This document shows positions 4,146-59,629 of a DNA stretch of 64,000 nucleotides, piece by piece. The stretch spans positions 22,196,001 to 22,260,000 of the forward strand of contig CM119384.1 of the NCBI GenBank assembly GCA_051294905.1. Reading direction: 5' to 3'. Position 1 is the first letter of the stretch. The number at the start of each line of letters is the position of its first letter. The DNA is from Botryllus schlosseri. Its lineage: Eukaryota. The notes under the pieces were generated by a model, which did not search any database, was not told the origin of the DNA, and saw only the letters and a list, made by a program, of their open reading frames with translations. A program made the position numbers and the translations under genes.

Positions 4146-5947
4146 TATACAATATTGCTTTTTGTGCTAAAAACGCTCGGACATGCTGAACGACATGAAA
4201 AACAAAAACAAAAATGGTATATTAATTTCGAACCAGCTATCTTAGTCTGAAAATAAAATAGAAACCAACACTTTGGTGCCTGGTTTATTCCATACAACCT
4301 TGATATCATTTGCTTTGTAAAACATAAAACAAAATAAAAATAGTATAAAACTTACATAAAAACACCCAGACCGGAGGACTCCCCTACGCTTTGAGAGAGG
4401 GGAGCGCGATGGCCTGGGAATACGGCGAGCCGCAAAAAAAAAAAAAAAAAAAAAAAAAAAGGTAAGCATCGCCGAGTGCGCTCGGTATTTTTTCAACTGA
4501 CATGTGATGAACAATATGCTACGGGTAAACGTCGGGGTGTATTCCCGGCTATGACACATGACATTGACACATGACTCGAAGCCCAATACACATTGTCGTC
4601 TACTTCTGACCCGGCGTTTCCGATAGCCTCTCCTTTCCGGCGCGGCGCTACGCCCCAACTCTACCTCGTGGCGGCGGGCGACGGCCGATCAGTCGGTCTC
4701 GCGTCGCGTGTCGCGTCTCGCGTCTCGCGAACAAACGCTCGAATACGCATCTTCGGCGACGTCGATAAACTGACACGTCCGCACTTACGCGATCGTCAGG
4801 TTGCGACGCGCAAAGAAAAAAAAAAAAAAAAAAAAAAAGGTAGCATCTCGTCGAGGCAGGTGTCTTTTAGAAATATTTTTACAGATTGCTGGTATCGCTG
4901 TGATACACTGTTGTTAAAATAACTTTAATTACATCTGCGCTGTGCAGCTAGCCTAAAAAGCCGTGCCGCCTTAGACTTCAGCGCCGTACACGTGACTACT
5001 CTACAGACCTACCTCGCCTTACACGCGGCTGCCGTGAACAGACTTCAGCGTACGCGCAGTTGTCGTTGGTCTCTTTAAAACCTACAAACAGCGCGATACA
5101 TATAAGGTAGCCATAAATTAAATAGATTACCTGCAGTCCAGGGCTGTCTTGCCTGCAGTCTTCACAACATACGGCTCACGCTGTATCGACCGAGGTTTCG
5201 ACACACATACAGGAATAGCGCAACTTAGGCTGCTTGCCTGCATCTCCAGCATACAACAGCTGCTTTGCTGTCGCGCCGGTTCTTCTAAACAACATTGCCT
5301 GTAGTCTTAATAACCACACGGTCTCTTTGTGGCCTTACCTGCAAATCAGAATACGACACAGGCATATCAGCACACGCAACTTACCTGTTGTGTCTTCCGC
5401 GATAGAGCCTCGGCGAATCTTGTGGTTGCCGTATTTGTTCTGATTTGAATTGACTTGGATACTTCACCTGAAATTCAAGAAACACGCGGTTACCTTACTA
5501 TATCTGATTGGTTATGCTAACACACTGTGCTAAGCCGAACGGAAAACGAAAAATACACTACCACAACAGCCGCCGACGTAAAGTTGGAGAAGCGGCTACG
5601 GTACAAATTAAATTCGGGAATTATCAAATAAAAAAGACATATCTGGATAGCTTTTGGCTCATAGAACACAATCCAGGCTTTAAAATAACAAAAAGATCAG
5701 GATTAGAACCGTAATAACACCAATAACGCGAAAAACTAGCGATTGTTATCTAGCCCGAAGACCGGCATTGTTCCGACAGACGAAACAATCGCTGGACGAA
5801 CTCCCGATTGTTCGGTCGCGGAATCCAACAATAGACAGATTTTGGATGTCGGTGTCAGAGCCTAGAATCGACCGCACCAGAGGCTATAATAGTCTACAAC
5901 AGACTAACCTCCAGACAAATACAATAGAACGACGACGCATTGACAAA

Positions 5948-7175
5948 ATGCAGCAAGCAATGGACGAAAACATGACACGAAATCTAGCCCAGAAGGGTAT
6001 GATTAGAAACGAAGACAGACCTCGCTCGCTTGTGATGACATTAAACATTTGTGATGACATTAAACAGAGAGACTACTTATGAAAATATCCTTGGACTCCT
6101 GGAAGAAAGCACAATTCTAAAGAAATATAAAAATGACATCACTGCAGTATTTCAACATGGTGTAAAAACATACACCATAACATTCAAAGAAAATGAAGAA
6201 TGCGAGACTAGAGAGAAAGTAATGCAAGAGACACAAGGCAAAATATGCACGGAAAATATAACAGCAATACTATATTTCCCCAGAAACGGATGGACTACCG
6301 TCCATATACGGGCAGTGCCAGATGAGGTGTCAAATGACGACCTCAAAAACTTCCTAGACTTTTACAAATGCGGAGAAATCAAAACAGTTGAAAAACTGCT
6401 CCACAGGGGCACTAACATTTTCAATGGAAACCGACGTGTATCTGTCAAGGATTACGTCGAGGGAAAACTGCCGAAAGTGATAAAAATTGGCAGCCTAAGC
6501 TGCAGAGTGTATCCCCCTCCGCCGAATGTTGAATGGTGTAGAAGATGCCTGAAGAACGATCACAGTGAGAGATACTGTAGAAACAAAATCGTATGCAACT
6601 TCTGCAAGAAGGAAGGACACAAATATAGTGTTTGCCCGGAGAAAGCGGCGGAATTCCCATCGCTGAACAGAGCGAGTAACACAGAAATTGAGAAGAATGA
6701 AAAAAGAACAGAAACGAGAATCAATAATAACAACAAGCCAACATCCCAAAATGGGATTGATGAAGCCCCGACTTCAAGTAAAGGAAGTGCCTTAGAAGGC
6801 GACAAGGAAAAAAATAATGAGCTACCGAGCGACGAAATGTTAGAAAATCTCGTGGCAGAAACCACGGAGGAAACAATTGAAAAAGATCAAGAAGGTGCCA
6901 GAAACAGAGAGTACTTAACAGAACTTGAAAAACTGGGCCTCATAACAGAAGAGGACGAAACAAAAATAGAAACAGGCGATGAAAGTGAATCGGAGGGGAA
7001 TAATAATGACCAGTCCAGCGAGGACGAATCGAAAATCGGCCGATACACCGAAAAGGAGAAGGCGATGATAACCAGTAAATGGAACACCCCTTCCAAACTA
7101 GGGAAGAAAAAGAAAAATAAGAATAAGAAAAAGTCGAAAAACGGATCAGCAAACAACAACCTGTTCCGGAAATAA
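5948..7175 (+). pseudogene. B1 ORF1 (RRM-like plus 2x CCHC), one frameshift near 6065
   Basis: RPRSL motif in the 5768 frame continues in the 6051 frame with VHIRAVP, CRRCLKNDHSERYC and CNFCKKEGHKYSVC; acidic tail. Confidence 0.85.
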
Positions 7176-7258
7176 GGAAGCGAATAACTAGATCTAGGCT
7201 AAAACAAAAATAAAAAATCAATTTCAACTTCAAGGACTCTTTCAAATTCAAATTCAAC

Positions 7259-10200
7259 ATGGCCTCGCTAAATATTAACGGGATAGAATGTCACAACAAA
7301 AAATTAGAAAGAACTATCATACGAGGAAAGTATGATATAATAAACATACAAGAAGCACACAAAACAAACCTGAAGAAATTAGAACACATGGCAGCGAAAT
7401 ACAATTACAAAAGTCACATCAACACATTAGACAAATCGCAAAACTGGCAAGACAAAGAAGGAAGAAGAAAGAACTACTACCTAGGAACAGTAACACTAAC
7501 TAAAATAGAACTAGAAAAGACATACACGATCCGAAACGACATTATTATCCCACATAGAGCACAGCTATTAACACTTGAACATCGCGTGAATCAGACGTCT
7601 ACAATCCACATCTGGAATATCTATGCCCCAGCGACGATAGGGAGGATGCAATCAACTTTCTTTAAAAGGCTAACGAAAGCACTGACCAAAAAGACTAACA
7701 CCTATACGGTCATATGCGGAGACATGAATGTGGTCACTGATGTAAAAGACGTGAAAATAAAACGGAATTTTAGATTGAATCCGGCGGCGAAAATTTGGAT
7801 CAGACACATCAAAACAAACAAACTACTGGACGCCTTCAGAGACAGGAATCCCGACAAAGAGATATTCACAATCACCAAACATAATCAGGCCAGACGTATC
7901 GACCAAATCTACATCACAAAAAATCTACAACAGAACGTTAAAAAATTCGAATATAAAATAAACATCATGTCAGACCATAACTTCATGAGTAGCATAGTGC
8001 TAGAGAATGTCAAAAGAAAATCATGGGGCAAAGGTACGTGGAAGAACGACCCAGCCATGTATGAAGATGAAATAGTCGTAGACCGCTTCAAAGAAATGTA
8101 TAACTTCTACCTAGAACAGAAGAAAAACACCCCAAACATAACATCTTGGTGGGACCAAATGAAGCTAGGAGCGAAAGAAATGCTATTAGAAAGAGAAGCT
8201 GAGTTGAAAAAAAACAAGATCAGAAAATCAAAAGAGCTTGAAAATAAACTAGCGGATAGGAATATAGGACTAGAAGACATGACTCGAACAATTAAGGAGC
8301 TAAAACAGATAGAAGATGAGAAGACAAGAGAACAATGTAGAAGATATAAAATCAAAGAATTCGAAGAGAATGAACGACCTTCAAGATATTTCTATAACAA
8401 ACTCAAGGCCAAAAAGACCAAGAGCCAAATAGAAATTCTTGAAAACGAAGACAAAACTGAGACCTATAGAACAGAAAAAGAAGTATTAAATGAGACAAAG
8501 CGATTCTACGACGAGCTCTGGAATAACGCTGAGATAGTAGAAGAAGATAAACAAGAAATGTTTATCAACGAACTAGAAAATATATCCATAACAGATAGCG
8601 AAAGAGACTCACTAAACAAACCAATTGGCAAAGAAGAAGTAGAAAAGGTGATTAAAAACCTCAAGAATAACAAATCGCCGGGAGCAGATGGGCTCTCAGC
8701 CGAATTTTATAAAACATTCTGGCATGTTATAAAGAGAGAGTTAATAGAAACTTTCAACAGCGCCTTTCTTTTTAATAACCAATGCCAGTCGTGGAGACTA
8801 GGCATAGTCAGGGTTATATATAAAAAAGGAGATCCAAACCTCATAAAGAACTACAGGCCCATCACGCTACTTGACCAGGACAATAAAATCCTGTCCAAGG
8901 TGTTGGCGAATAGGTTAAAGGAACTATTGCCCAACATAGTAATGAGCCCACAGAAATGCAGTATAGAGGGAAGATCAATCTTTGACGCAGCACAAAATAT
9001 TGAAGCTGCCATTCAATATTCAAAAGACAAGAACCTACCTCTTCTGATCACGTCTTTTGATCAAGAGAAGGCTTTCGACAAAGTCAACCATGCCTTCCTG
9101 GGAAAAATCCTAGGAAGATTAAACATGGGTGATAATTTCACAAAGTACATTCAAAAAACATACAGAGAAGCTGCGAGCCAAGTAGAAATTAACGGAAAAC
9201 TCACGGAAGAAATATCCATCAATAACGGGATTAGACAAGGATGCCCTTTAAGCATGCCTTTATACGCCCTGTGTGCAGATCCGTTAATAAGGAAAATCGA
9301 GTGTAACAAAGATATCAAAGGCCTAAAACTGGGGAAACAAGAAATAAAGACGCAAATGTATGCGGATGACCTAACGGTATTTGCTATAGATAGGAAATCC
9401 CTAGAGGCGACCATCGATATACTAAAGCAGTTCGAAGTGGCTACAGGCCAGAAAATCAACGAGCAAAAAACAGAGACACTAAACATCAACAGCAAATCGA
9501 ATTTAGCATTATTAGGCTCGAAATATGAAAGTTGGAACAAGGAACAAGTAAAAATATTAGGATACCGTTTCGGCAAAAGTGACATACAAGACAGTTGGAG
9601 GGAAAAAATTGACAAGATAAAAAAAATACTAAATAATTACAGAGGAAGACACCTATCTTGGATAGGAAAGACAAATGTTTTAAAAAGCCTTGCGTGCACC
9701 CAGATCGCATATACCGCAAGAGTGAAGAGGATGCCTCGAGAAGTCCAAAAACAGATCGAAGGCATATTCTTCAGATATTTATACTTGCCAGAGAAAGTAG
9801 AGACGATAAAGAGAACAACCTTGATTAAAAAGAAAACAGAAGGGGGAATGAAAATACCCTATGTAACAACCTTGTCCGAAGCTTGCCAGATCATCAATTA
9901 CAAGAGAATGGCAAACCAAGACAAGCCGACTGAAATTTGGCATTACACAAAGATGTATTATCTTGGAACAAAGATTAGAGAAGTTAATGCTGAGCTATAT
10001 ACTAACGATATGCCACACAAGTTCAAATTAGAAAAGAACTTGGCAGACCAAGTGGAGCTCATCAAAAAAATAAAATTAGACAAAGAAGACTGGCAAAAAC
10101 TCACATTCAAGGAATTATATAACAAATTGAACGCATTCCACGAAAATCAAACAAACCAGAAAACAGACTGGGACAAGCTCACCCTCGAGAAGTCGAAGAT

Positions 10201-10663
10201 GAACATTATTTTAAAAAAAGAAGAAAAAATCATTAACTTCAGACTAGCGAACGAAGGATATTTGTTCGGAGAAGATAAGAGAAGAAGAAACCTTCTGAAA
10301 ATCAGAAAAGGGAAAATGGAAACACACAAATGTAGACTGTGTCGCCAAGAAAACGACAAAGTCCAACATGTGTTTAGTAAATGCAAATTCACACAGGACA
10401 TATTGAAAAAACTAGAAGAAATATTCAGCATCAGAGTCAGAGAGCCGAAGTTTATACTACAACATCAAGGCACGGCGAGCGAAACCACCATAGCCCTAAT
10501 CTCGATATTCAAAAAAGTCACGCTAAAATATAAATGGTACCTAGACATTGAAAATAAAACAACAGAAAACGACGAAGAAAAAAGAAATTTGATTCGAAAC
10601 ATCCACGAAAGACGGCGACACGTATCAGAAAAACACCAAATTGGAAACAACTCAACACCTTGA
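7259..10663 (+). CDS. B1 ORF2: APE endonuclease, reverse transcriptase, C-terminal CCHC (1134 aa, uninterrupted)
   Basis: SLNING, NIQEAH, NIYAP, CGDMN, RIDQIY, SDH (APE); KSPGADG, YRPITLL, FDQEKAFD, GIRQGCPLS, QMYADD (RT); CRLC...HVFSKC. Confidence 0.96.
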   Translation: MASLNINGIECHNKKLERTIIRGKYDIINIQEAHKTNLKKLEHMAAKYNYKSHINTLDKSQNWQDKEGRRKNYYLGTVTLTKIELEKTYTIRNDIIIPHRAQLLTLEHRVNQTSTIHIWNIYAPATIGRMQSTFFKRLTKALTKKTNTYTVICGDMNVVTDVKDVKIKRNFRLNPAAKIWIRHIKTNKLLDAFRDRNPDKEIFTITKHNQARRIDQIYITKNLQQNVKKFEYKINIMSDHNFMSSIVLENVKRKSWGKGTWKNDPAMYEDEIVVDRFKEMYNFYLEQKKNTPNITSWWDQMKLGAKEMLLEREAELKKNKIRKSKELENKLADRNIGLEDMTRTIKELKQIEDEKTREQCRRYKIKEFEENERPSRYFYNKLKAKKTKSQIEILENEDKTETYRTEKEVLNETKRFYDELWNNAEIVEEDKQEMFINELENISITDSERDSLNKPIGKEEVEKVIKNLKNNKSPGADGLSAEFYKTFWHVIKRELIETFNSAFLFNNQCQSWRLGIVRVIYKKGDPNLIKNYRPITLLDQDNKILSKVLANRLKELLPNIVMSPQKCSIEGRSIFDAAQNIEAAIQYSKDKNLPLLITSFDQEKAFDKVNHAFLGKILGRLNMGDNFTKYIQKTYREAASQVEINGKLTEEISINNGIRQGCPLSMPLYALCADPLIRKIECNKDIKGLKLGKQEIKTQMYADDLTVFAIDRKSLEATIDILKQFEVATGQKINEQKTETLNINSKSNLALLGSKYESWNKEQVKILGYRFGKSDIQDSWREKIDKIKKILNNYRGRHLSWIGKTNVLKSLACTQIAYTARVKRMPREVQKQIEGIFFRYLYLPEKVETIKRTTLIKKKTEGGMKIPYVTTLSEACQIINYKRMANQDKPTEIWHYTKMYYLGTKIREVNAELYTNDMPHKFKLEKNLADQVELIKKIKLDKEDWQKLTFKELYNKLNAFHENQTNQKTDWDKLTLEKSKMNIILKKEEKIINFRLANEGYLFGEDKRRRNLLKIRKGKMETHKCRLCRQENDKVQHVFSKCKFTQDILKKLEEIFSIRVREPKFILQHQGTASETTIALISIFKKVTLKYKWYLDIENKTTENDEEKRNLIRNIHERRRHVSEKHQIGNNSTP

Positions 10664-11065
10664 AAAAATTCGAAGAAAAGGCGGAAGAACCCCTAACATA
10701 AAAAGGGGGAAACCGCCACTGAAAATACAAGTACAAACCTGAAGACTTCAACGGAAGATTCGAGAAAGAATGCGGATGACGGAGACACGACGCCGAAGGG
10801 ATGCTGACGAACGACCGATGACGAACGACCGACGGACAACGATGATGATGACGATGATGCTGACGAAACCTGGAAAAGAAACTGAAATGAATATGATGCA
10901 TGGGTATGAATGCGAGTGCGAATGTCATTTTGTGTTTGAAACTTTACCGAATGAATGCTGCGATTGAGAACTGCGATTTGATAGATTAATTTGCCCTTTT
11001 CTTGTATTGAAATTCTATCTGAATTAAATTTGGGATGACCGCGGTCATCCCCCCACAAAAAAAAA

Positions 11066-14000
11066 TTGGCGCAACATTGATGGCGCAAGCTGCAAAGTAT
11101 TCACGCCAACAATAGAGAAAAGAGCGCAGCCCCAAAAAACTTGCACAAGGTGCAATAGAAAAGGACATCTGGCTACGCAATGCAACCTTGCATATTGTAG
11201 CCAATGTGAAAAAACAGGGCACACAAGAGAACAATGTGAGGAGCTTGAGAAAGAGTTTCCAGCATTGGGAAATCCGCAGAAACAAATAGTAAACAAAGAA
11301 TCAAAGAAGAACCCGACCTCTGAAGTCGAATCAGAGGAACAAGAAAAAGAACAAAACAACAAAAATGTAATAAACGAAATGAGCGAAGAGGTGGCAGAAC
11401 ACCTAACCTCCTCTTCATGCGATTCAGAGTCGGAAGAGGAAAGAGAAACCGATGATAGTGATGCACAAGGAAAAGGAGCTAGCAACCAAGAAGATGGCTT
11501 TGCTCTAGTGCAAAATAAAAATAAGAGGAAAAGACTCTCTACTGAGAGGAGGAGAAGTAACAGTAAGAAAAGAAACGTAACCATCTACTGAGAGGAGGAG
11601 AAGTAACAGTAAGAAAAGAAACGTAACCAATCCTAAGGACAAGAAATAGAAATGGAACTCCAGATTACCTCACTAAACATAAACGGGTTCACGAAACATT
11701 GGAAAAAGATAACTCAATTATCAAATAAATACAACATAGACGTGCTTTGCCTCCAAGAAGTACATAAAATAGATAAGGAGAAATTGGAAAATTGGTGTAC
11801 CAGTAACAACTTCGAGATGCATGCCAATTGTCTAGACGTAAAAGACACTTGGCGAGATGAGGATCAAGGTAAAAAGAACTACTGTCAAGGTACCCTTGTG
11901 ATAGTAAAAACAACTTTAAAACAAGAATACGACATAACCAACGATATTATAATAGAAAACAGAGTACAGAGAATTACATTGAAGAAAAACAACAAAGAAA
12001 ATTTGGAAATCTGGAATATATATGCGCCACCGGGAGTTTCAAAACATACAACAGACTTTTACAAAAATCTAGTGGAAAACACAAAAAAAAACAGGAAATC
12101 GCACACTGTTGATAGGAGACTTTAATCTAATTACAAACAAATTGGACGCTAAGAATAACCTAAATTTCAAAAGATCACTGGCCGCAAACATTTGGAAAAA
12201 TTTTACAGACATTCATGGGTACCAAGACATATACCGATCCAGACACCCGCACAAGAAGTTGTACACCAAGAAAACGGGAGACCAGGAAAGACGCATCGAT
12301 AACGCGTATGCCACCGACATCCTGAGCAAAGACATCACCAAATGTACATACAAGATCAATCCTATTTCGGACCACGTCTATTTAATGGAAATAAAAATTG
12401 GAAACCAAAAACAAAACAGATGGGGCAAAGGAATTTGGAAATGTAACAAAGAGGTATTAACAAACAAACAAACGAAAGAAAATATAAAAATGATCATTGA
12501 AGTTATGTCACGAAACAAACATAACTACACACACTTGTCGAAATGGTGGGATGATATAAAAAGCAAAATAAAAAGAGCCTTACAAGCGTATGAGGTAACA
12601 GCAGAGAAGATAGAAAAAAGAAAAATCAAAGAATTAGGTCGGAAAATAGAAGTAGCGGAGAACAATCAAGACCAAACGGCCAAAATAAAACTGCAAGGTG
12701 AACTGAAAAAGTACGAATGGAAGAAATTAGAATTTACAATAGAAAAAACGAAGATGAAAGATAGAGAAGTTGGCGAGAGACCAACGAAACCTTTTTTCGA
12801 TATGCTAAAGAAGAAAACATCCCTACAAAGAATGAACTGCGTAAGGGATAAAAACGAAAGGGAACTAAAAGACCCAAAGCAAATAAAGCAGAGGGTCGAA
12901 CAGTTCTATGAAGAGCTATGGAGGGCCCAGCCTGATGTAGATGAAGAAGAGCAGAGGCTCTTCTTAAAACAAATTAAAGACGTTAGGGTCAAAGAGGAAG
13001 ACATGCCTTCACTTGAAGGACCCATAACGCAAGAAGAGATCAGAGAAACGATAAAGAAAATGAGCAGTGACAAGACGCCCGGTAGCGACGGGCTGACCAA
13101 AACCTTTTATACCACCTACTGGGAGAACATAAAAGGACACCTAGAAGAACTATACAATAATGCACTGTATATGGGAGACACGTGCGAGAGCTGGAATAAG
13201 GGGATAGTAACTTTAATATACAAAAAGGGAGACTCGAAAAACCTAAAAAATTGGCGACCCATCACACTATTAAACCTGGACTACAAAATTTTAACAGCAA
13301 TTATATCCAATAGACTAAAAGAAGTAATGGAAAATCTGATCATAAATACACAAAAATGTGGAGTAAAAAATAGGCAAATTGCAGACGCTTTAAGAAACAT
13401 AAAAGCAGCATTAGACCAAGCATTCAGAAAGAACACAAATCTCATAGTAATATCCATAGACCAAGAAAAAGCTTTCGATCGTGTCAACCATAATTACCTA
13501 CATAAAATTCTGCATTCCTATGGCATACCAGTGGGAATAAGAAAATGCATAAAAAGACTATATGATAATTCATATAGCCAAGTGCAGATAAACGGTACAC
13601 TGACAAATGGCATAGACACAGGCAGGGGACTCCGTCAAGGATGTCCCCTCTAAGCATGTGTTTATATGCAATGACAGCGGACCCGCTGGCCAGAAAAATC
13701 ATGGCCAGCAAAGACATAAAAGGCCTGAAAATTGGAAAAAACGAAATTAGATTGCAACAATACGCGGACGACCTGACAGCAATAGTATCAAATGAAGATT
13801 CGGCAACAGAAGTTTTTAAAAATTTAGAGCAATTCGCAAAAGCAACGGGACAAATCAAAAACCGAAATTATATGTACTAAACCCAACCTAATTAGATCTG
13901 AAGAATATAAAAAATACATAGTGGAATCATCAAAAATACTCGGACAAATATTTGGCAGGAACTATATCCGCAAAACATGGGACAGAAGGATAGAGCAGGT

Positions 14001-15939: not shown

Positions 15940-15965
15940 TTGGCTTGGTTGTGTTAAAGGTAAGA
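15939..15965 (+). other. Degenerate SL-exon variant with GTAAG donor
   Basis: ATTGGCTTGGTTGTGTTAAAG|GTAAG. Confidence 0.45.
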
Positions 15966-15992
15966 ACTCAATAATTGATTGCTACAACTAAC

Positions 15993-16015
15993 GGAGTATT
16001 TGGTTGTATTAAGGT
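15993..16015 (+). ncRNA. Spliced-leader exon (21 nt) plus GT donor at the 5' junction of element C1; truncated SL RNA gene or target site
   Basis: GGAGTATTTGGTTGTATTAAG|GT, identical to the last 21 nt of the stolidobranch ascidian SL as I recall it. Confidence 0.75.
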
Positions 16016-47988: not shown

Positions 47989-50128
47989 TTAAATATGGCT
48001 TTATCATGAAAATTCATGATAAGAATTGTTCGACTGGTTTTTCTGGAAAACGTAGTCGAATACCGTTGGGATGAACTAGTGTAGCGGTGTGCAACGAGCG
48101 ACTTCAGGCCTATGAGACTCGTTCATTTCGAGGCCAACCCCTTCTGCGTCGGGGCACATGAAGACGTAAAGTTTTGACGCACAAACCGCTGATAAAAGGC
48201 GGTGCCAAAAACATGAGCGGCGACAAAACCTCGGTCTGAAAATGACCGATGCTGGATGGCAAAACCTTTCGAGATGAGTTGGATATGCTCCGTTGTCGGC
48301 ACGGAATAGTACCGTTCTTGCAATCTGAGTAGACAGTAGTACAACTGCGATACGCAGAGGAATTTAATTAGCCCTAATTTGAAATCGCGTGTGTCAGACA
48401 TGTTTTGTAGAGCTGTGTTGGGTAGAAATGTGGTGTGAGCGTTCTGTATGTCATACATGCCCGTAAAATCGTAGCATACAACTGTAATATTGAAATATAT
48501 ATTCCTTTTCATGGGTGAGGCTCGGGTCGCGAGATGCCACAAAAACTCAGATTAGTTTTTGTGGCAGTCTAAAAGTTGCTTTACCGTTATTAAACTCTCA
48601 TGCATTCTCAAGCAAGATTGAGCTAAAGAGTAGAATACACAGTATCGTGAGTTGTTTGCTATTCTCATTAACTTGCGAGACAGAAGTTGGAGCAACGTAT
48701 CATCTGGTAGCGAGCTCTAATGTGCATATACTCTCGTTGATCGTTTTGCACCTTATATTCCAAAGACATAAGGCAAAAGCCTCAACACAAACATGTGGGT
48801 TTTTCATCCTTTCGACAAACTGGAGCCTCACGGGACCTTTGAGTCAGCTCTCAAAAACGATTTCTTCCGGAAAGCATTTTTCACTCGCAAAAAATACGCT
48901 GTATTTTGGATAGGAGTGCAGAACAGATTATAAGACCTGGCCATCCAAGCACTAGTACATGTTCTTGTACAAATCTCCAACAACATCGTTTGGCCGAGAA
49001 GGATTTCAGTGAAATAATTGAAAGCAAAACGAGCGAAAAAAGTTGCCTTTTTAATGAGACACTTGATAGCTTAAGCTACATAGTAGCCAATTTTTTGCAC
49101 ATCTGAACAAAACCATTGTTACGTAGGCCTATCTATCTTCATCTTCTTTTTGTATAACGATTTTCGATTAGTTTGGGCGAATGAAATTTATTTTACAAAA
49201 AAAGTGCGAACGGAGCTCAAAAAGGTTGAAAAGCACTGCACTAGAGCAAAGCCATCTTCTTGGTTGCTAGCTCCTTTTCCTTGTGCATCACTATCATCGG
49301 TTTCTCTTTCCTCTTCCGACTCTGAATCGCATGAAGAGGAGGTTAGGTGTTCTGCCACCTCTTCGCTCATTTCGTTTATTACATTTTTGTTGTTTTGTTC
49401 TTTTTCTTGTTCCTCTGATTCGACTTCAGAGGTCGGGTTCTTCTTTGATTCTTTGTTTACTATTTGTTTCTGTGGATTTCCCAATGCTGGAAACTCTTTC
49501 TCAAGCTCCTCACATTGTTCTCTTGTGTGCCCTGTTTTTTCACATTGGCTACAATATGCAAGGTTGCATTGCGTAGCCAGATGTCCTTTTCTATTGCACC
49601 TTGTGCAAGTTTTTTGGGGCTGCGCTCTTTTCTCTATTGTTGGCGTGAATACTTTGCAGCTTGCGCCATCAATGTTGCGTCAACCTTTTTTTTTTTTTTT
49701 TTTTGCGGCTCTCCGGAAGCCCAGACTTTCACAGGGCTTCTCTCATCTGATATAAGCCCTGCTACGGTCTGGGGGTTTTATTGTATGTTATATTCAAATT
49801 AAATAACTCAGTTGAAATTAAATATACCTATTTTTCTTTGTTTTTGTTCGCGATGGCTGATCTCATGTACCTCAGTGCAACCAAATACTCCAATAGCTGC
49901 GTCGGGCTTGAAGCGGCAGTATTTCCATTTGTGTGGGAAAAGCTAACCGCCGGACGCGAGCGGTTGGGGAGTCTTTGGGTTGCCTCCCTCTCCTCCCCAG
50001 GACAAGTTTTTTCTAATTTTTATTTTTGGTTGGCGTTTGGATTGACCAAGGTTTATCTTGGAACCCAACATACCAACCAGAGTTTTTAGTTTTCTTCCTA
50101 TTTTCTTCTTTTGCATGTGTAGCAGACA

Positions 50129-53100
50129 CTATGCTTTTTCTAGTTTATTTGTCAAGTCTTTCATTTCTTCGTCAAGATCTTGGAGTATTTTCAATCTTTG
50201 CCGGAGCGTGCCACACGTTTTTTGGAGGATCTCCGTTACTACATTTTGCATATTTGGTGGTTTGTCGTTTTCGAATTCCAGTTTTATTCGGTTTTGGGTT
50301 ATTTTTTGTTTGTATATAGCCAGAATCACCCCTGCTTGGTTTTTTCTTTCTTCCGTTTCTTTTCCATTAATCACGTGATCTTCTGTTATTTTTATGCGGT
50401 TTCCTTTTTGGTCTCGAATATAGTTTTGGAGTTTTTTCAGAATTTCTTGGGCGGCGGGGCACTCGTATACAATATGTCGTGCCGTTTCCTCCGTGTGGCC
50501 GCAGTGTCGGCATTTGGTTTTAGCTATTTTCCCGTATTTGTCGTACAGGATATTTTTTGTCTTTCTTTTCGCGCCGAAGAGGTATCCCTCGTGCGCTACT
50601 CTGAAGGACGTGATTTTTTCTTTGTTGGTTATAATCCGTTCTACACTTCCTGTTAGGAAGTGGATGTTTCCCCACTCGATGTTTGAGTGGGGGGTAGGGC
50701 CCGAATATTTATTTTCAAAATTAGCTTTAATGGCCTGATAGAGTTGTTTCTGAGTGGCTTCCTTCAGTTTTTCTAGGGGCCAGCTCAGAGTTTCGTTTTT
50801 TCGATTTCTTTCCATTCCTTCGGAAGCATCGTTTTGTGAGGCATGCTGTTTGAAAACAGGGCCTTGTTCCATTTTTTTATAGTTGGGCCCAGGCAGTATA
50901 GGGCATGGAAGTGCCAAAATTCCGTCGGGTTTTTTATGACGGCTAATATTTTGGCTTTTTCCGCCTTGACAGCTTTTATCTTGGACTGGATATGCGGTAT
51001 CGCCATTCCGCCTTGGATTTTCTGCCGGATAAGGGTTTTCCGAGACACCATCTCCATCTTTTCGGGGTACCACACAAATTCAAAAAAAAGCCTGTTCATG
51101 GTGGTTGATATTTCCATAGACGGGGTGCTAGATACATCTTGTTTATTATTTTGGGTACTATGATTGTGTTTAATACCAACTGTTTTCCGTACCATGTTAA
51201 ATTTCTTTTTCTGAAGTCGAGGAGTTGCCCTCGAATGGTCTGTATCGTCTTTTCCCAGTCTTCGTTTTCCTGTTTTTCACCAAAATGTTGGCCCAATATT
51301 TTTATTTTTAATTTGGTCTGGTTTTGGAAATGTCCCGCTATGTATTTATCTTTCGGATTATTAAGGGCAAGGATTTCCGTTTTATTTTCGTTTAATTCTT
51401 GCCCCGTGGCTCTTTTTAATAATTCGAATTCCTTGTAAACATGTAGGACTGATTCAAAGTCCTTGGTCGTCGTTGTAATATCGTCCGCATATTGCTGGAG
51501 CTTTGTTGCGTGTTTTCCGATTTTGATACCCCGGATGTTCGGATTTTCCCTTATGCGTTCGGCTATTGGTTCGGCTGCGATGGAGTACAAATAGGTACTG
51601 AGGGGGCACCCTTGTCGAAGGCCCCTTTTTACGTGGATGTTTTTTGTGCTAGCCCCATTTATGTATATCCTGTTGGTTGAGTTTTCATATATTGTTTTTA
51701 TGAGTTTGGTGATTTTACTTCCCATGTTAAATTTTTCCATGATCTCAAATAGCAGTTGATGTGATATAAGGTCAAAAGCCTTTCGTTGGTCGAAATTGGC
51801 TATGACGACTGGGATATTTTTTGATTCTGTGTATTCTTTAATTGATCGCACGTTTCTCAGTATGTCCGTCATTTGTCTACCGCGGATAGCTGATTTTTGC
51901 GTATCTCCGATAATTTCTCCAATAAACTCCCTTATTCGGTTGGCGAGAATTTCCGAAAGGATCTTGTAGTCGACATTCGTTAAGGATATTGGGCGCCAAT
52001 TTTCAAGGTGTTGTGGGTCGCCCTTTTTAAACAAGTTTTACCGCTGAGGTTCCCCAGGAATCGCATATTGTTCCGAAAAGGATAGCGTTATTATACAGCT
52101 GCCATAGGTCGCCTTTAACTAGTCCAAAAAAAGTTTTATAAAACTCGGCTGATATGCCATCTGGACCGGGGGATTTGTTTGAGGTCTGTTCTTTCACTGC
52201 CCGTTCTATTTCTTGCTCCGTGATGGTGGAGTCTTGGAGCTCCGCTTGATCTTCTGTAAGGGCTTTGTTTATGGAATTTATAAGTTTTTTCCTGTCTCCC
52301 TCCGGTCCTGTGTGGGTTTGACCCCCAGAGTTTGTTGTAAAACCCCCAGGTGGCGTTTAGAATCTCCTCCTTCTTCTCTACCCGTCTGCCGTCTTCCTCC
52401 GTGACCGCATCTATTACTTTCTGAGACCGTCTGTTATTTAATTTGGTATAGAACGAATGCGTCGGTTTTTCCTCTTTCTCTAATTGATCTTTATAGTGTA
52501 TTTTCATGAGGAATGTTAGTTTGTCCTTTTCCAGTTGTTTTAGGTTTTTCGTGATTTGTTGCCGTTCATCTGGTGTTGTGGTGGGATTTTCTATTAGTTT
52601 TACCCAGTGGTCTCTTTGTTTGTTTTCCAATTTTTGTTTTTCTTGGCCAAATTGGATGGAGACTGTTTTCATTTTTTCTTTCCATTCATCCCACCACAAT
52701 TGTAGGCTTCCGTATTTCGCTTTTTCCAAAGAGTGTTCTGTAAAAAGGTTTTTTATGATGGTCTGAAATTCCTGGTTTTGATAATGTGACGTATTGTTGA
52801 TCCATAACCCTTTTTGTTTTTTAGGTGTTATCACGATCTTCTGAAAGTAGGTATGGTCTGCGACGGCGTTCGTTTTATATTCGCATTTTCTGGTGTTTAT
52901 GCAGAGGTTCTTCGTCATATAGACGCGGTCTATCCTCCTAGAGTTAACGGCTTGTTGATAGAATATATTCTTTTTTCTGGCTCTCGCCAACGAAATACAT
53001 CGTGGAGGTCTTTTTCGGTGGTAAAGTTGCGCCACTTGGCTGCTACTAGAGAGAGCCTAAAGTTACTGGTGTGTTCTACATCCTTGATTGATGTCACCAT

Positions 53101-53570
53101 GTTAAAATCTCCTGCCACGATAATCGATCCCTGCTGTTGTTGGATAGCTTGGATGGTTTCGTCGTAAAACTGTTCTTGGAGTTTTATGTTGGTGTGTGGT
53201 GCGTAGACATTATATATACTAACCACATGTTTCTGGTCTTTTGTGCTTATCGTGACACTTTGTAGTCTGTGCGGGACGTGGATTTCATGGTGTACGTCCA
53301 TGTCCTGCAACCACTCTTTCCTAATGAATATAAGGGTTCCTTGGTAATACAACTTTGTCGGTTGGTTGACCCACGCGTCGTTTTTTTTCAAGGCAATTGG
53401 TGTATAGTTCAAGATCATGTTTTTCGGCCCATTTTGTAACGGCATTCCTTTGGATTTCGTGCGTTTCTTGTACGCAATACACGTTTACTTTCTCAGTTTT
53501 CATGAATTGTTTTATCAGATTCCAGTGTACGTCTAATCCGTTTACGTTGATCGTCAAAATTGACAATGGC
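50129..53570 (-). pseudogene. C2 ORF2 (APE-RT), frameshifted
   Basis: Successive minus ORFs 53321, 52930, 52136, 51096, 50785, 50129 match C1 ORF2. Confidence 0.9.
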
Positions 53571-53574
53571 AGGT

Positions 53575-54729
53575 TTATTTCTTCGAAGGAGCTGAAGGTG
53601 ATGCCGAAGTGGTGTTTGCATCTCTCCTTGTGGTGCTTGTGAATGTTGGCCTAAGTGCGGTTGACTTTTTACTCGCCATCCTGATTTCAGGACTTTCTTC
53701 ACTCCGCCTTTTTATTGGCGATGCCGGTATATTATTACGGAAGGTGTATTCAGACATGGTTTCCGGGACACTCGGCAGCCTTGTGTGTGCCGGTGTCCTC
53801 GGTTCTGGTGTTGCGGTTGTGGTATCAGACATTGTTGTCCATACGGACGTCTGTGATGAAAAGGATGCTACATGTCTTGTAGTTGCACCGTCTTTCGGTC
53901 TATCCGTCCCTTCTTTCTCGTTATTCTCATTACTCTGTTCTGAGTTTTCGTCATTATCTATGTATTCTTCTTGTTCCCCTTCTGCTTGTTCTACATCTGG
54001 TTCCTCGCCTATGATCAGGTTGCCTTCGGAGGAAGACTCACTGGTCATGTTATGCTCCTCAGCTTTCCCAGCTTCCTGAGCTGTAGAGTACTCTTGTTTC
54101 AAGATGGGGCATTCTTGGCGTCTATGGCCTGGGGTTTTGCATTCCATGCAAACTACCGGGCTTTTGCAGTTTCTTGCCGTGTGACCGGATTGAAGACAAT
54201 TATAGCACTGAGGTGCATATTCACCGGGTGGCCGGTAAACCTTGCACCACAGCTTTCTAATCTTTATGACCGGTGGTAGCTTGCCTCTTTTATAATTTTT
54301 GATCATTAGTCTTCGGTATCCGTTATGGATTTCACTACCTCTGTGATTTACTCTGATCATTTTAATGACTGTGCCGCAGTCATGTTTATGTATCTCGTCT
54401 TTCACTTCACTGTCAGAGGCTTCAGTTGGAACCGCCCTTACGTTGATGCTTTCATATGGCGTTGAAGCCTCTGCAAAGGGTATTAGTCCTGTTTCTATTG
54501 ACAGGCCGTCTTGCCATGCAAGCAGGAGGTCGTTCTTTGTTTTTGCCATCTCATCGTTGTTTTTGATCGTGATATTATAGGTAGTAGGGCCTATCTGGTA
54601 GACAGACTCTATCTGCGCGTTTAGGTGCTTCGTTTCGCTGCATTCTATAATCGCAGCGAGCACCTGTTGTGTATTTGTATTCTCAGGAACGGTAGCGTCC
54701 AAGGAGCGTGGTCTACCGTCTATGTCCAT
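53575..54729 (-). CDS. C2 ORF1 (384 aa)
   Basis: Nearly identical to ORF 16667..17821. Confidence 0.92.
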   Translation of the reverse strand: MDIDGRPRSLDATVPENTNTQQVLAAIIECSETKHLNAQIESVYQIGPTTYNITIKNNDEMAKTKNDLLLAWQDGLSIETGLIPFAEASTPYESINVRAVPTEASDSEVKDEIHKHDCGTVIKMIRVNHRGSEIHNGYRRLMIKNYKRGKLPPVIKIRKLWCKVYRPPGEYAPQCYNCLQSGHTARNCKSPVVCMECKTPGHRRQECPILKQEYSTAQEAGKAEEHNMTSESSSEGNLIIGEEPDVEQAEGEQEEYIDNDENSEQSNENNEKEGTDRPKDGATTRHVASFSSQTSVWTTMSDTTTATPEPRTPAHTRLPSVPETMSEYTFRNNIPASPIKRRSEESPEIRMASKKSTALRPTFTSTTRRDANTTSASPSAPSKK

Positions 54730-55392
54730 GTCCCGCTTAGCCTGTAGGCTATCGGAAAAGGATAGCTGTAGCAGAGTTTGCTGTCTGTTTGTTGAAGCGC
54801 GCTTTGTTTAGTTCCTATGTGCTTTGCGAAGACCGATACGCCGGTTTCGCTACGCAAAGAGCTATACGGACGCCGACTAGGCGGTGTCGTAGCGCTTTTC
54901 TAATTAGTCCAAAGGTAGCAGACAGGCTCCCGTCGCCTTAAGCGAAAGGCGCGGGAGAGAATAAGGTAAAGTAGAGACTTGACTCTCGAGAGAGAGTCAA
55001 GTCTCTGAAGAATAGACTCAACAAGTCCTGACTCACGAAGACGAGTCAGGACTACAAGAGGAAAGACTCTAACTAGAGTTGACTCACGAAGACGAGTCAA
55101 GCTCTAGTAGAGGTAGATACAGACTCCTTCGAGACTCGACTCGGGAAGAGGAGTCAAGTCTCGACGAGGGAGGAGGGGTGAGTCTGAAGGAGACTCGAAG
55201 TAGAAGTAGGAAAATCCGGCGATGAAGAAGGAGGTAGGAGAAATAAGCCTAAGTAAAAGAGAAATTAAACCTAGGTATAACGAAACTTATCTAACGTTTA
55301 CGGTAACTACAACGGCCACAGCGGCTCAATTGAAGATCTTTATACCTGGAAATAGCCGTTACGTACTTAACACAATCAATATTGCGTCAACC

Positions 55393-58300
55393 TTTTTTTT
55401 TTTTTTGCGGCTCTATGGATACCCAGACTTTCGCAGGGCTTCACTCATCTGATATAAGCCCTGCTACGGTCTGGGGGTTTTGGGTACATCTTCGTTGTAT
55501 ATAAGTATAGGATCTTCATTGTAGACCATATTACAACCAAACACTTCAATGGATGGAGTATAGGTAGGTTTGGCGTACTTCGTTTGTGGGCAAGTAGCTT
55601 CCCACCTGTCGCACGCGGTTTGGGGCTTTTGATTCGGCCCCTCCCTCCTCCCCAGAAGGGATTTTGCCCAATTTTCTCCTTTAGGTTGTCGTTGGATTGC
55701 CTAAACTTTCGTTTGGAACCCATTTGGGCATACGTTTTACGGTGTTTCCTCCAAGATCTTGTTATTAAGGTTTTTTAACTCGCTGCAGAGCAGGGTTCTG
55801 GCTGCGAGTCTTTTTATTGCTGTTGCTGTGATTTTTTTGTATATATTTTTCGCCAAATTGGTTTTGTCATATTCGTTTTCGTTGGTTCTGTCCAGTTCTA
55901 GTCTGTGTTTGAGCATTTGTGTTTTGTAAAGCGTGGTTATAAATTTTGTTTGTTTTTGATTAATTTCAGTGGGTTTTCCAAGAATTATGTTCTCTCTCTG
56001 CAGAGGTGTTCTCTTTCCGTTTTTTCTGAGGAGGTTTTCGAGGAGGTCTAGGATTGGTTTGGCTGCACCGCATTCCCACAGAATGTGGGCAGCGGTTTCT
56101 TGGTGGTGTCCACACTGTCTGCAGTGCAGCCTTGCCAATCCGCCCGTCCTGGTCGTGAGGATGTTGTGTTTTATTCGGGTTGCCCCGAATAGATACCCCT
56201 CATGCGCGGCTCTATAACTCGCGATTTTTTCACTGTTTTTTACCAAGTGTTCCTCCCCAGGCTGGTCGTGGAGAATCTTAGCCCACTGTGCCTGGGGGGT
56301 GTCGGGGTTTGGCTGCGTGTTCTTGTTCCTCAGAGCCCCGTATATTTGTTTCTGCGTGGCTTCTGTCCACTGCTCTTGTGTCCAGGCCAAGGACCTCTTG
56401 GTGTCCAATAGCTCTCTCCACTCCTCATTTAAGAGGTCTCTCCTGGGACCCCTGATGTTTTGTAGTTCCGGGTTGATTTTTTTTGTTTGAGATCCAAGAA
56501 TGTATAACGCGTGGTGGTGCCAGAACTGGTCTGGCTCCTTCATTGCTGCGATGATTTTGATCTTTTCTACTCTACATGCCTGTATTTTGCTGGCGATATG
56601 GGGGAGGTCAAAGCCCCCCTCCTTGGCGGCTCTCATCATTGTGTTTCGTCTGATGACCTCTATTTTCTTGGGCGACCACATGAATTTACATATAAGGTTG
56701 TTCAGTTTGGTGACAGTGCTTTCGTTTGGGGGGCACGTTTTTGCCTGGTACAGAACCTTTGGGACTATGATGGTATTGATGATAATTTTCTTTCCGTACC
56801 AAGTTAAATTTCTTCTGTTGTTGCTGATACATGCTTGGTTTACTTTCTGTATCACCTTGTCCCAATTTAGTTTGTTTTGGTTCTTGCCAATTTGCTGGCC
56901 AAGTATTTTGATCGTAGGTTTTCTTAGATTTGTCAGGTTTTGGTAGATGTTGTCGTCTTTCGGTGAGTTCATTTCAAGGATTTCGGTTTTGTTTATGTTT
57001 AGTTCTTGTCCAGTGGTTTGTTTTAGTTTTTCGAATTCTAGTATGGTCTGTTTTACAGATTCGTAGTTAGTGCAAAGGATTGTAATATCATCCGCGTACT
57101 GCTCGATTTTTATGGTTTTGCTGCCTAATTTAATTTTATGGTTTTGCTGCCTAATTTAATTCCAGTGATAAGTTTGTTCCTACGGATCCTTTCCGCCAGG
57201 GGCTCTGCCGCTAAGACATATAAATATGTGCTTAGCGGACATCCCTGGCGGATGCCCCTTTTGATGGTGATTTTCTCTGTCATCGCGCCGTTTATTACGA
57301 TTCTGCTGTATGAGTTTTGATACAGGTGCTTTATTAAATCGGTGATTTTCTTCCCGAACTTGAAATGCTCCATGATGGTGAAAAGGGTTTCTTGAGACAC
57401 CATATCAAACGCCTTTTTTTGATCAAAATTGGTGATGAGCAGGGGTGTTCCTCTTTGCTCTGTTAACTCTTTCACTGTGGCCACGTTCCTCAGGACGTCA
57501 GATATCTGACGTCCCGGGACCGAGCATTTTTGAGACGTTCCTACTATATGCGGCATGGATTCCTTAATCCTGTTAGCCATGATCTTCGCCATTATTTTGT
57601 AATCGCAATTCGAGAGCGATATTGGCCGCCAGTTGTCGAGGCATAACATGTCTCCTTTTTTCGGAATCAGTACTACGTGCGATTCCCCCCACGTCTTTGG
57701 TATGCTTGTGAAGCATAGCGCATTGTTATAGATTTCTAGGAGACTGTTTTTAAGGGTCCCGAAGAATGTGGAGTAAAATTCTGGCGAGAGTCCGTCCGGT
57801 CCAGGTGTTGTTGAGGTTTTTTGGGAGCGTAGCGCAATTTTTATTTCTTCCTCTGTTATTATTTGATCTTGTTGTGATCGTTGGTCCGGAGGGATTTCCT
57901 TTTCGAGTTCATTTACCATATCTTTGATGCTCCCTTTGGGTGCGTTGTGCGCAATGCCCCATAGGTTGTGGTAATATTTATGTACGTGAGTAAGGATGTT
58001 GTTTTTCCCTCGTAATGGCTCTTTGTTGGTGTCGGTGAGCTCCGTGATGCATTTTTGTTTTTGTTTTACTTTCAATTGTTCGTAAAACTGTTTCGTTGGC
58101 TTTTCTTGGTCTTCCATGTTATTTTTGTATTCTGACTTCATCAGGAAATCTATTTTTGCCTTCTCTAGGATTTTCAGCTCCTTGATTAGCTTGTTTCTCT
58201 TCTCGTTTGTTATATTTGGGTTCTGTAGTAGTTTCTTTTTTTGGCTTATTTCTTTCGTTTCTATTTGTTTTTGCTCTATGCCGTATTGTATCGATGTTAT

Positions 58301-59629
58301 TCTGATTTTGTTTTTTAGGGCGTCCCACCATTGTCCTATGTTGGGATAAAGAGCTTTCTCTAGCTCGAACATCTTAATTTCGTTCCGTATGTGCGCTATG
58401 TATTCTTGATGGTTAAAGTGTGCCGTGTTGTTTTTCCAGCTAGGCTTTCCCCATTTTTCTAGGTGTTTTGGCTTGAGGATCAATTCCACGTAATGTGTGT
58501 GGTCTGAGATCGGGTTTATCTGGTATGCTATGTTTTTCACGTCTCCTAGCAAGTTTTTTCCTGTATAAATTCGGTCGACTCTCCTTTTGTTTTTTGGCGC
58601 ATTCGTCGTGTATACTTTTGTGTTCGGGAAGTTCCACCTGAATGTGTCCGTAACGTTGTTTGTTTTTATGTATTGTTTCCAGACGGTCGATGCCGGAACT
58701 TCGGTGAACGCGTCTGGGCGCTCAACGTCTATTGCTTTTGTTACAATATTGAAGTCCCCTAGGATAATGGGGTATGTTGGTGCGTCTTGATGTTCTAGCT
58801 TACTCGTCAACTCCTTGTAGAATTCTAACTGTTTGTGTTTGCCCGATGGTGGAGCGTACACATTCGTGATTGCTATTGTCTCTTCGTGCTGCAGGTGTAT
58901 GATTAGTTGCTGAGCGCGACGCGGTATGATGGTATCGTGCTGTGTTTTTGAAGAGTCAGGGAGCCAGGATTCCTGTATTAGGATCGCTGCTCCTTGGTAG
59001 TAATGTTTAGGGCCTTGTTCGTCTTCTGGTGTCCATTTGTCGTCTCTGTCCAGTGTGTTTAGAAATATTTTGTAGCCTTGCTTTTCTGCCCAGGTAGTGA
59101 TTTGATGTTTTTTGATTTTATGAGTCTCCTGGACGCACACAATGTTGGCTCCCTTTGCCTTTAGGTAGGCTTGGAAGCTGTTCCAGTGTGTCTGCATTCC
59201 ATTTATGTTTATTGATAAGATAGATGTTGGTGGGACGCCGAATTTTAGGATTTAAAGAGGTTTACCAGGTCTTGTTCCCCCACGCCTTTCTTGCGTTGCT
59301 TGCTTGCGGGTTTCGGCGGAACTGGTGGCCTGTTTTTGTTTAATTGGACTTCGAAGTTTTCCTCCGAGCTGTTGCTCCTTATGCGCTTAATTGGAGACGC
59401 CTGCAGGTTTTTCAAGTCATTCGCGCTCACTCTGTGTGGTACAGTGCTCGACATCGCCCTTCGCCTTGATTGCAAGGGTGGTGAAGTTGGCGTAGGTATT
59501 TGCGTGCTGTCTTTTATTGTATGCTGGGAGATGTCTTCCCATATTGACTCTCCTGCCGCGTATGGGGTTTTGTTTTCGTCACTTTCAGGTGACTCCAGTA
59601 TTTGGAGGTCACCTGGAGTGTGTTCTTCC
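55393..59629 (-). mobile_element. E-family copy E2, lacking its 5' part
   Basis: ORF1 tail 59245-59629, ORF2, 3' UTR, poly(T) 55393-55406; homology to E1 stops at a minisatellite. Confidence 0.9.
55737..59230 (-). pseudogene. E2 ORF2 (APE-RT), broken by a short tandem duplication near 57110-57160
   Basis: ORFs 57125..59197 and 55737..56972 carry APE, RT and CRQC...HILWEC motifs. Confidence 0.9.

Follow-up and report, generated by a model that had tools for sequence, protein, structure and literature searches.

The 64-kb stretch of Botryllus schlosseri DNA analyzed here, referred to in the following as the window, most likely holds arrays built by a single clade of LINEs from the L1/Tx1 group that insert site-specifically (families A, B, T, C/D, E and F), together with SINE-like partners, the RNAs of which are headed by the spliced leader (SL) and the head junction of which is cut again by later insertions. 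We put the probability of this reading at about two in three. The elements were laid out in the window as follows:

3949–4460, plus strand: Element A, LINE with 5' truncation, 3' part present, tail A27
4461–4838, plus strand: S1, short SINE-like unit, head GGTAAGCATCG, tail A23
4839–11065, plus strand: Element B, full-length LINE, head GGTAGCATCTCG, 3' end ...GGTCATCCCCCCAC-A9
6051–7175, plus strand: Element B ORF1
7259–10663, plus strand: Element B ORF2, intact, 1134 aa, APE and RT
11066–15939, plus strand: Element T, LINE, head TTGGCGCAAC, tail A9, 99% identity to minus-strand T'
15940–15992, plus strand: X, piece of another head, 53 nt, degenerate SL and then GTAAG
15993–16013, plus strand: SL of C1, SL positions 5–25, at the C1 5' end
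16014–16050, plus strand: C1 mini-outron, with GT, donor-like GTAAGTA, branch-like CGTAAC, a T-run and CAG
16051–21698, plus strand: C1 body, CCHC ORF1 at 16667–17821, ORF2 broken, tail ending at 21698
21699–22769, plus strand: S2 and S3, SINE-like units in tandem, each ≈535 bp, heads TTGGCTTGGCACGC, tails after ...CCCC
22770–28473, plus strand: Element D, C-related LINE, head beginning TAACACGTGAGTA, which is the T of GT
28474–35884, plus strand: Element E, LINE, head GGTAACC...GTAAGTA
35885–36394, plus strand: S4, SINE-like unit, head TAGGCATCG, tail A27
36395–41205, plus strand: Element F, LINE, head GGTACTTGGCGCGTAAGTA, cut by an inversion breakpoint near 41200
41194–49685, minus strand: Element T', head GGTTGACGCAAC at 49685
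49668–49685, minus strand: 3' copy of the C2 target-site duplication, the 18 nt that open the T' head
49686–55374, minus strand: Element C2, 96.7% identical to C1, tail at 49686–49704
55375–55392, minus strand: 5' copy of the C2 target-site duplication, 18 nt, directly after the F' poly(A)
55393–59628, minus strand: Element F', 5' truncation of ≈1.5 kb, ≈90% identical to F

Divergent families with APE and RT domains were thus stacked without spacers in a plus-strand and a minus-strand array, as the initial annotation had described; ORF2 identity among families B, T, C/D, E and F was 30–50% at the amino acid level, and ≈75% between C and D. Element A, a further piece of which lies at 1335–1659, opens the plus-strand array, and F' adjoins a minisatellite; neither has an SL upstream. 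T' carries ≈5.5 kb of sequence (43734–49236) in addition to that found in T, and just a truncated SL remnant is left at the 5' end of C2. All of the previously listed tail junctions were present: GGT directly follows the poly(A) runs that end at plus-strand positions 4460, 4838, 28473 and 36394 and at minus-strand positions 49686 and 55393, and the remaining tails are followed by TTGGC (11066, 15940), TAAC (22770), TAGGC (35885) or (G)TTGGC (21699, 22234).

Stacking of this kind might in principle be an assembly artefact, or have come about solely by segmental duplication and inversion, and the breakpoint near 41200 and the pairs of similar elements on opposite strands would fit such an origin. 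However, the pairs are unequal in identity (99%, 96.7% and 90%) and reversed in order, so a single inverted segmental duplication was rejected. The neighbors also differ between the two arrays, and the same junction types occur on many chromosomes. We consider this origin highly improbable.

The proteins are consistent with the APE-type Tx1/L1 classification given in the initial annotation. ORF2 of Element B matched PF03372 (APE) and PF00078 (RT), and its homologues carry PF13966; the CCHC ORF1s were confirmed as well. A C-terminal CCHC-type finger was seen in the alignment as invariant C1025, C1028, H1037 and C1042, so that ORF2 has an N-terminal APE domain, an RT domain and a C-terminal Cys/His finger, the arrangement of the L1 group. 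When B ORF2 was compared by Foldseek, Xenopus Tx1 ORF2 ranked first (E = 2e-54), followed by L1 ORF2 (1e-52 to 4e-51), all at 22–25% identity, and SLACS was a distant structural match at rank 15. On the strength of these domain and structure predictions, the elements are assigned to the APE-type L1/Tx1 group.

A 23-mer matching the SL is found at 15993–16015, and C1 begins directly after this SL and GT, as noted before. Shuffled windows gave an expectation of 0 matches to the 23-mer at up to 3 mismatches. Three more matches, with 2–3 mismatches, were found in the window (at 4122, 21496 and 49891–49869, the last on the minus strand), all in 3' UTRs and none at element starts; the first two belong to SL-like sequences in the 3' UTRs of A (a 25-mer at 4118–4142) and C1 (21496–21518). 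Genome-wide, the 23-mer occurred 566 times at up to 2 mismatches, versus 0 for the reversed control. The motif, which the initial annotation had taken to be the SL, agrees with the chordate SL consensus printed in a review (GATTGGAGTATTTGGTTGTATTAAG), and a template-switch oligo was joined directly to GATT plus the SL of the window in 911 reads of RNA run X9 and in reads of runs X5 and X7. The motif is the spliced leader of the species, which is 25 nt long in full.

The SL copies beside the elements had been taken for SL RNA genes, a view that the copies themselves contradict. In two LINE copies (L037 and L042), 13-nt duplications enclose everything from the SL to the poly(A), and the same is true for duplications around ≈10 SINE copies. 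In an unbiased sample of 61 SINE heads, 45 were SL-led, with the SL starting anywhere from G1 down to AAG only, and with unrelated flanks. Likewise, the SL of a C-family copy on contig 11 begins at its base 6, next to random flank, and microhomology was found at the 5' junction of L037. Because the SL lies inside target-site duplications, has variable 5' starts and is preceded by unrelated flanks, it must have arrived with the retrotransposed RNA: the SL beside these elements is part of the insert and not an SL RNA gene. When the sequences that follow the SL were listed, no true SL RNA gene was found, and every class was a repeat family. Some classes with Sm-like and hairpin motifs were tried as SL RNA genes and rejected, since they are located inside long retroelements. 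Rfam gave no matches in the whole window at the gathering threshold, and at E up to 1 only a chance miRNA match in the repeat- and SINE-bearing loci. For annotation, this means that SL matches in this genome mostly represent retroelement 5' ends; hundreds of genomic SL copies, otherwise liable to be annotated as SL genes, are accounted for.

The SL-led SINE-like units are ≈450 bp long, non-coding and tailed, with duplications of 5–16 bp, and have their target in common with the LINEs. A short unit with an RNA-derived 5' head, poly(A), duplications and the target of a partner LINE corresponds to a SINE with a small-RNA-derived, SINEU-like head. SINE RNA was abundant in the RNA runs and starts at SL base 1. 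In every family of the clade the SL is followed by GT, whereas other SL-led repeats in the genome differ in this respect. A further copy, L044, reads SL followed by GTGATCC, which is the spliced form of mini-outron copies that read ...CAG followed by GTGATCC; as judged from this copy, the splicing signals of the mini-outron appear to be put to use.

An abundant repeat (Rep-T) supplied the most frequent target. Its uninterrupted form occurs 3,641 times in the genome, and the site lies between ...AAATTTGG and TGAGCATCG (…TTTGG before TGAGCATCG). At one base of this repeat, poly(A) was joined to TGAGCATCGTTTC in at least 62 cases, versus 0 for the reversed control, and the 3' ends at these junctions are of many types, A/C/F, B and SINEs among them; the 3' end type of Element B abuts this site elsewhere in the genome. 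The same cut was found at SL-headed SINE heads, after AAGG and before TAAGCATCG, with ≈24 junctions of poly(A) to TAAGCATCG. Among poly(A)-preceded SINE heads of the unbiased sample, 14 of 16 were cut at exactly one base, the T of GT, and in all three SINE arrays that could be checked, the first unit was SL-led. Judging from these junction sequences, the endonuclease of the clade strongly prefers to cut directly before T(G/A)AGCATCG, a site present in the abundant repeat and recreated at the resident SL-head junction, ...TTAAGG followed by TAAGCATCG. Counting against our reading, the cut is offset by 0–2 nt between head types (A before GGT versus GG before T).

C2 provides a direct trace of insertion at a head, having entered the T' head between A(n) and GGT and left an 18-nt duplication. 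This duplication of the entered head and the fixed junctions of A(n) to TAAGCATCG show that the head junction is re-used, as had been suggested earlier. C2 alone has such a duplication among the array members in the window. A head duplication followed by a second SL was not seen at any head; the four cases found were all at the abundant repeat.

The specificity is a strong preference and not an exclusive one. The abundant repeat harbors about 6 of the 20 loci of SL-led SINEs, as well as the 3' ends of several LINEs. Together with the junction counts above, this amounts to target preference in the sense of PMC4494074, which asks for more than 20% of copies in one kind of sequence. Isolated copies were also found at sites with loose or no resemblance to the motif, and a strict specificity for AAGGT after TT was rejected because of the other flanks of such copies. 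The proposal that the elements target the SL donor thus stood in one part, as the preferred cut is at or next to the G before GT after the SL, and failed in another, since the most frequent target is a different, donor-like repeat.

A stronger version of that proposal makes the elements specialized parasites of working SL RNA genes that insert where exon and donor meet and rely on the SL promoter for transcription, with the dispersed SL-led copies and the repeat insertions as off-target progeny. The consistent SL plus GT of the clade, a preferred cut within the GT of a donor-like site, and the resemblance of the abundant target to an exon followed by GTGAGC would all be expected in that case. 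So would the SINE head, which is predicted to fold like an SL RNA, pairing the SL with an anti-SL stretch in a long stem (z = −3.1); it contains a consensus donor and has no Rfam match. If so, the SL RNA intron would start GTAAGCATCG. However, no conserved promoter-like sequence was found upstream of any SL beside the elements, the SL lies within duplications at unrelated loci, and the SL-following sequences included no genuine SL RNA gene, whether empty or occupied. We regard dedicated SL-gene parasitism as unlikely.

In the preferred reading, in which LINEs and SINEs with SL-headed RNAs re-cut their own head junctions, retrotransposed RNAs begin with the 25-nt SL and GT, so that new copies are SL-headed, variably truncated, and carry the SL within their duplications. 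The same start recreates the donor-like cut site, which would allow copies to stack head to tail. Insertion at a head would place the new element between the resident SL and the resident head. Where an SL is present upstream, the 5' end would be resolved through SL-to-SL homology, and where a poly(A) precedes the head instead, that poly(A) would still provide AAG-like bases. The expected outcome is an array that is headed by one SL and has junctions of poly(A) to (GG)T... in its interior. As each insertion would carry in a new head, arrays would feed themselves, and such growth would account for the two clusters on this chromosome.

A different origin for the arrays would be landings in resident poly(A) tails alone, with the heads not recognized and the junction set where the A-run shares microhomology with the AAG or A2 of an SL-bearing cDNA. 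The microhomology at the L037 5' junction is in line with this, and the joining of A(n) to TTGG and to GGT matches the sole A and AA positions of the SL. Arrays that open without an SL, as with A and F', also fit. In contrast, the 14 heads that start at the T of GT leave no possible A microhomology, SL-led copies at other sites vary broadly in truncation, the cut between G and T is also found at 62 sites of the repeat where poly(A) is lacking, and the C2 duplication spans head sequence, not an A-run. As a sole explanation, poly(A) landing is quite improbable, but poly(A) insertion may contribute to arrays as well.

Two observations run counter to insertion at heads. A and F', the first elements in their arrays, are 5'-truncated as well as lacking the upstream SL, explicable under that model only by target deletion. 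Furthermore, the four junctions of A(n) to TTGG are better fitted by a downstream element joining a poly(A) than by a head cut.

Given the preferred reading, the SL head could have been acquired in three ways. The leading candidate, although it falls short of even odds, is that element transcripts are trans-spliced, either at the conserved branch/CAG acceptor or farther upstream; transcription starting at an inherited SL head is a plausible but somewhat weaker possibility, and a template switch to SL RNA is doubtful. The SL variant GGCTG recurs in 5 SINE copies, which hints at inheritance of the head rather than fresh trans-splicing. The C1 body was nearly silent in four RNA runs, and the 5' end of C1 RNA was not seen there.

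A head junction that doubles as an integration site offers a testable model for self-extending transposon landing pads and ties transposon biology to trans-splicing. More speculatively, and in our view with rather low likelihood, the SL exon and donor might serve as a portable transcription start and perhaps as a working leader donor, with retrotransposons dispersing functional or competing SL RNA genes and an endonuclease that evolved to cut the SL donor junction. If that were true, the trans-splicing system and a transposon clade would be mechanistically coupled in a chordate.

Several known systems invite comparison. NeSL of nematodes and SLACS, CZAR and CRE of trypanosomatids encode restriction-like endonucleases and are found within genuine SL RNA genes. 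The Botryllus elements are likewise associated with a spliced-leader exon, but their endonuclease is APE-type and not restriction-like; insertion into a functional SL gene was not found among the SL-led copies, in which the adjacent SL belongs to the insert. Dinoflagellate retrogenes reportedly carry relict spliced leaders, sometimes as tandem partial copies, as Slamovits and Keeling are said to have described in 2008. In both cases, retro-copying of RNAs has left the SL at their 5' ends fixed in the DNA. In Botryllus, however, the SL is carried by autonomous LINEs, by SINEs and by other retroelements, and the SL–GT junction is an integration target too. An SL followed by a partial SL was also seen among the genomic copies in Botryllus, but these partial copies do not begin after AG. 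Spliced-leader exons are listed among LINE targets (PMC4640811). A search confined to published papers returned no report of SL-headed or SL-junction-targeting APE elements.

Tx1L of Xenopus laevis is an APE-type LINE that inserts into a non-autonomous DNA transposon at a specific position (PMC4494074). Xenopus Tx1 ORF2 is the best structural match of B ORF2. Specificity in Botryllus is strongly preferential, not exclusive. To our knowledge, Tx1L carries neither an SL nor another RNA as a head. Of the known systems, the most similar is that of the Tx1-Mar LINEs and SINEU SINEs of crocodilians, in which APE LINEs are accompanied by SINEs with 5' snRNA heads and the target is DNA-transposon-like (Kojima 2015, PMC4494074). 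Both systems have APE LINEs with partner SINEs whose 5' ends bear small-nuclear-RNA-type sequence, a 5' sequence that is repeatedly added, a common preference for one position of an abundant, DNA-transposon-like repeat, and copies flanked by further copies. In Botryllus, unlike in crocodilians, a conserved branch/acceptor mini-outron follows the head, and the head junction itself mimics the target; repeated cutting there produces long arrays of several families. What is new here, compared with the U1 and U2 heads of crocodilians, is a chordate SL head, SL plus GT, common to at least five deeply divergent LINE families and SINEs.

The features that the initial annotation had described were all present in the window, confirming the observation itself: a 23-mer made of the putative spliced leader (SL) and GT at 15993–16015, with element C1 starting directly behind it, poly(A)+GGT junctions, APE/RT elements, and stacked divergent families. 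The element 3' ends are marked by ten long A-runs, both strands together, six of them followed immediately by GGT and the others by TTGGC, TAAC or TAGGC; C1 ends in an additional tail (21683–21698), followed by GTTGGC. APE and RT domains were found in the ORFs, with CCHC knuckles in the ORF1s. ORF2 amino-acid identity between families is 30–50%, a deep divergence, except for C versus D (~75%). Self-comparison gave the following layout of LINE copies (A–F, T, primed copies), SINE-like units (S1–S4) and a 53-nt head fragment (X), where the head is the 5' start of an element:

Plus strand: A, S1, B, T, X, SL-C1, S2, S3, D, E, S4, F
Minus strand: F', C2, T'
41194–41205, near 41200: inversion breakpoint where the two arrays meet, F (plus) and T' (minus) tail to tail

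T' carries ~5.5 kb additional to T (43734–49236). Element A is interrupted by inverted repeats of ~840 bp (1664–2503 versus 3931–3125, 87.6% identical, with internal tandem repeats), probably a foldback element or DNA transposon. F' is truncated at its 5' end, where it adjoins a minisatellite with a ~16 bp unit (59638–60030). Families A, C and F also have an SL-like sequence plus GT in their 3' UTRs, 200–300 bp upstream of the poly(A):

4118–4142 (plus), 21496–21518 (plus), 49891–49869 (minus), 55551–55527 (minus): SL-like 3' UTR sequences

The motif is the SL of the species, as had been proposed. The chordate consensus printed in a spliced-leader review is GATTGGAGTATTTGGTTGTATTAAG, and in RNA reads with the same species label the template-switch oligo was joined to GATT plus the 21 bases of the window (911 reads in one run, more in two others), showing that capped RNAs of the animal begin with this 25-mer. 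Many different sequences followed the AAG of the SL in these reads.

The SL copies adjoining the elements are not SL genes. At least 227 exact copies of the SL are present in the genome, followed by the starts of many unrelated repeat families and not by GT alone. Copies of the window families elsewhere begin with the SL at base 1, 2, 3, 4, 5 or 6, in unrelated flanks. The 13-nt target-site duplications around two full-length LINE copies enclose everything from the SL through the poly(A), and the SL likewise lies inside the duplications in ~10 copies of a 450-bp SL-led SINE. In a sample picked without reference to the SL, 45 of 61 SINE heads were SL-led, with truncation points ranging from base 1 to AAG alone. 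SLs within duplications, variable truncation and unrelated flanks are what reverse transcription of an RNA starting with the SL leaves behind. The SL at 15993 itself starts at base 5, with a head fragment and poly(A) upstream and no promoter. Parasitism of SL RNA genes by these elements is putative. SL-led copies are general across this genome.

A genome-wide listing also contained full SLs followed by a partial SL (GTTGTATTAAG, TATTAAG or TAAG) ahead of the element body, for example on contig 1 near 24293332 and contig 4 near 10071905, which indicates that the leader was added repeatedly; the partial copies have no AG before their start.

Behind the SL in families C–F there is a conserved GT, a donor-like GTRAGTAT, a branch-like ACTAAC, a T-run and CAG, kept though the families otherwise diverge:

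16014–16050, 22770–22803, 28474–28515, 36395–36433: post-SL motif in the window; also at loci L036–L043 elsewhere
L066:1180–1298 (minus): SINE head with a predicted fold, at a locus outside the window; also in other SINE heads

One further copy (L044) runs from the SL into GTGATCC without this motif and reads as the spliced form, from which it follows that the CAG acceptor is used. SINE RNA is plentiful and starts at SL base 1. A highly abundant RNA in run X9 starts with the SL, goes on with GTAA and extends through SINE-body sequence (window 21753–21786); in this run it accounts for most SL-containing reads on that stretch. The SINE head is predicted to fold with SL bases 6–20 paired to an anti-SL stretch ~45 nt downstream, in a long stem that would enclose a covarying hairpin together with the donor (dG = -41 kcal/mol, z = -3.1). 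Five SINE copies share a variant of the leader. The SL head could have come from trans-splicing, from transcription starting at an inherited head or from template switching to SL RNA; these data are compatible with all three.

SL sequence was also present in two long retroelements on another chromosome:

L011:1009–7927: long retroelement
L014:1031–8040: long retroelement

Both combine a CCHC gag, RT and RNase H with a weak protease signal and, at the C terminus, a Tpt1/KptA RNA 2'-phosphotransferase domain (PF01885); neither an integrase nor an LTR was found within 10 kb. Within the element lie an Sm-like motif, a hairpin and the SL, which is exact and followed by GT; upstream of these, conservation extends over at least 700 bp. 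Next to the L014 retroelement, at L014:8161–9090, is an ORF whose product has an IS1595/ISXO2-like DDE transposase domain (PF12762, E = 3e-13).

Several independent LINE and SINE copies share an identical flank, which belongs to a repeat. Uninterrupted copies of it number 3,641, and most of them stand in head-to-head pairs. In this repeat, 62 poly(A) tails from many families, including the 3' ends of A/C/F, B and SINEs, meet one exact base, ...TTTGG/TGAGCATCGTTTC (slash, junction), compared with none in the reversed control. The head of the SL-led SINE, ...TTAAGG/TAAGCATCG, is nearly identical to this site, and ~24 poly(A) tails meet exactly its T. Of 16 SINE heads with poly(A) upstream in the unbiased sample of 61, 14 start at that single T, which fits a site-specific nick and not random 5' truncation. 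The first unit was SL-led in all three SINE arrays open to checking. The proposed target specificity holds in part, as a strongly preferred cut, but the adjoining SLs are not the genes it was thought to act on.

The inverted pairs of the abundant repeat lie ~150 bp apart (for example at L042, L060 and L069), and the repeat, which had no match in Rfam, includes ...AAATTTG/GTGAGCATCG, resembling an exon–donor junction. Possibly, this is a foldback element that carries an SL-like gene.

On either side of C2 there is an 18-nt direct repeat, identical to the opening 18 nt of the T' head and beginning directly after the F' poly(A), so C2 entered the T' head at A(n)/GGT. The suggested re-use of the junction is directly supported by this insertion. 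The mechanism thus has observed parts: SL-led RNAs, a preferred cut before T(G/A)AGCATCG, and one head insertion leaving a duplication. If the cut has an SL upstream, an incoming SL-bearing cDNA would be joined via SL homology, with no duplication or second SL; no case of a duplication followed by a second SL was found at heads. With poly(A) there instead, the insert would keep a truncated remnant of the SL and be bordered by a duplication, as in C2. Every insertion would supply a new head, so that arrays would expand in place, and the two clusters on this chromosome fit such growth. Head insertion leaves unexplained the arrays of A and F', which begin 5'-truncated without an upstream SL, and four A(n)/TTGG junctions. 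A rival process, in which new copies enter poly(A) tails through A-microhomology, may contribute to the arrays.

Overall, the phenomenon is genuine and has good support, and the mechanism first given for it wants correction: the elements are APE-type, site-specific and headed by the SL, they cut the SL-GT head junction anew, and a parasitic relation to SL RNA genes is putative.

The modeled ORF2 of B best matched Xenopus Tx1 ORF2, narrowly above L1 ORF2, and these matches place the elements in the L1 group, with no more than that narrow preference for Tx1. NeSL and SLACS-type elements occupy real SL genes, which was not found for the present elements, and use a different endonuclease from the APE type seen here. 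The nearest described system is crocodilian Tx1-Mar with SINEU (Kojima 2015, PMC4494074), in which U1 and U2 heads occur on LINEs and SINEs, the head is added recurrently at the 5' end, and a Mariner element is the common target. In contrast, the head here is the SL, a mini-outron lies behind it, and the head junction itself is targeted.
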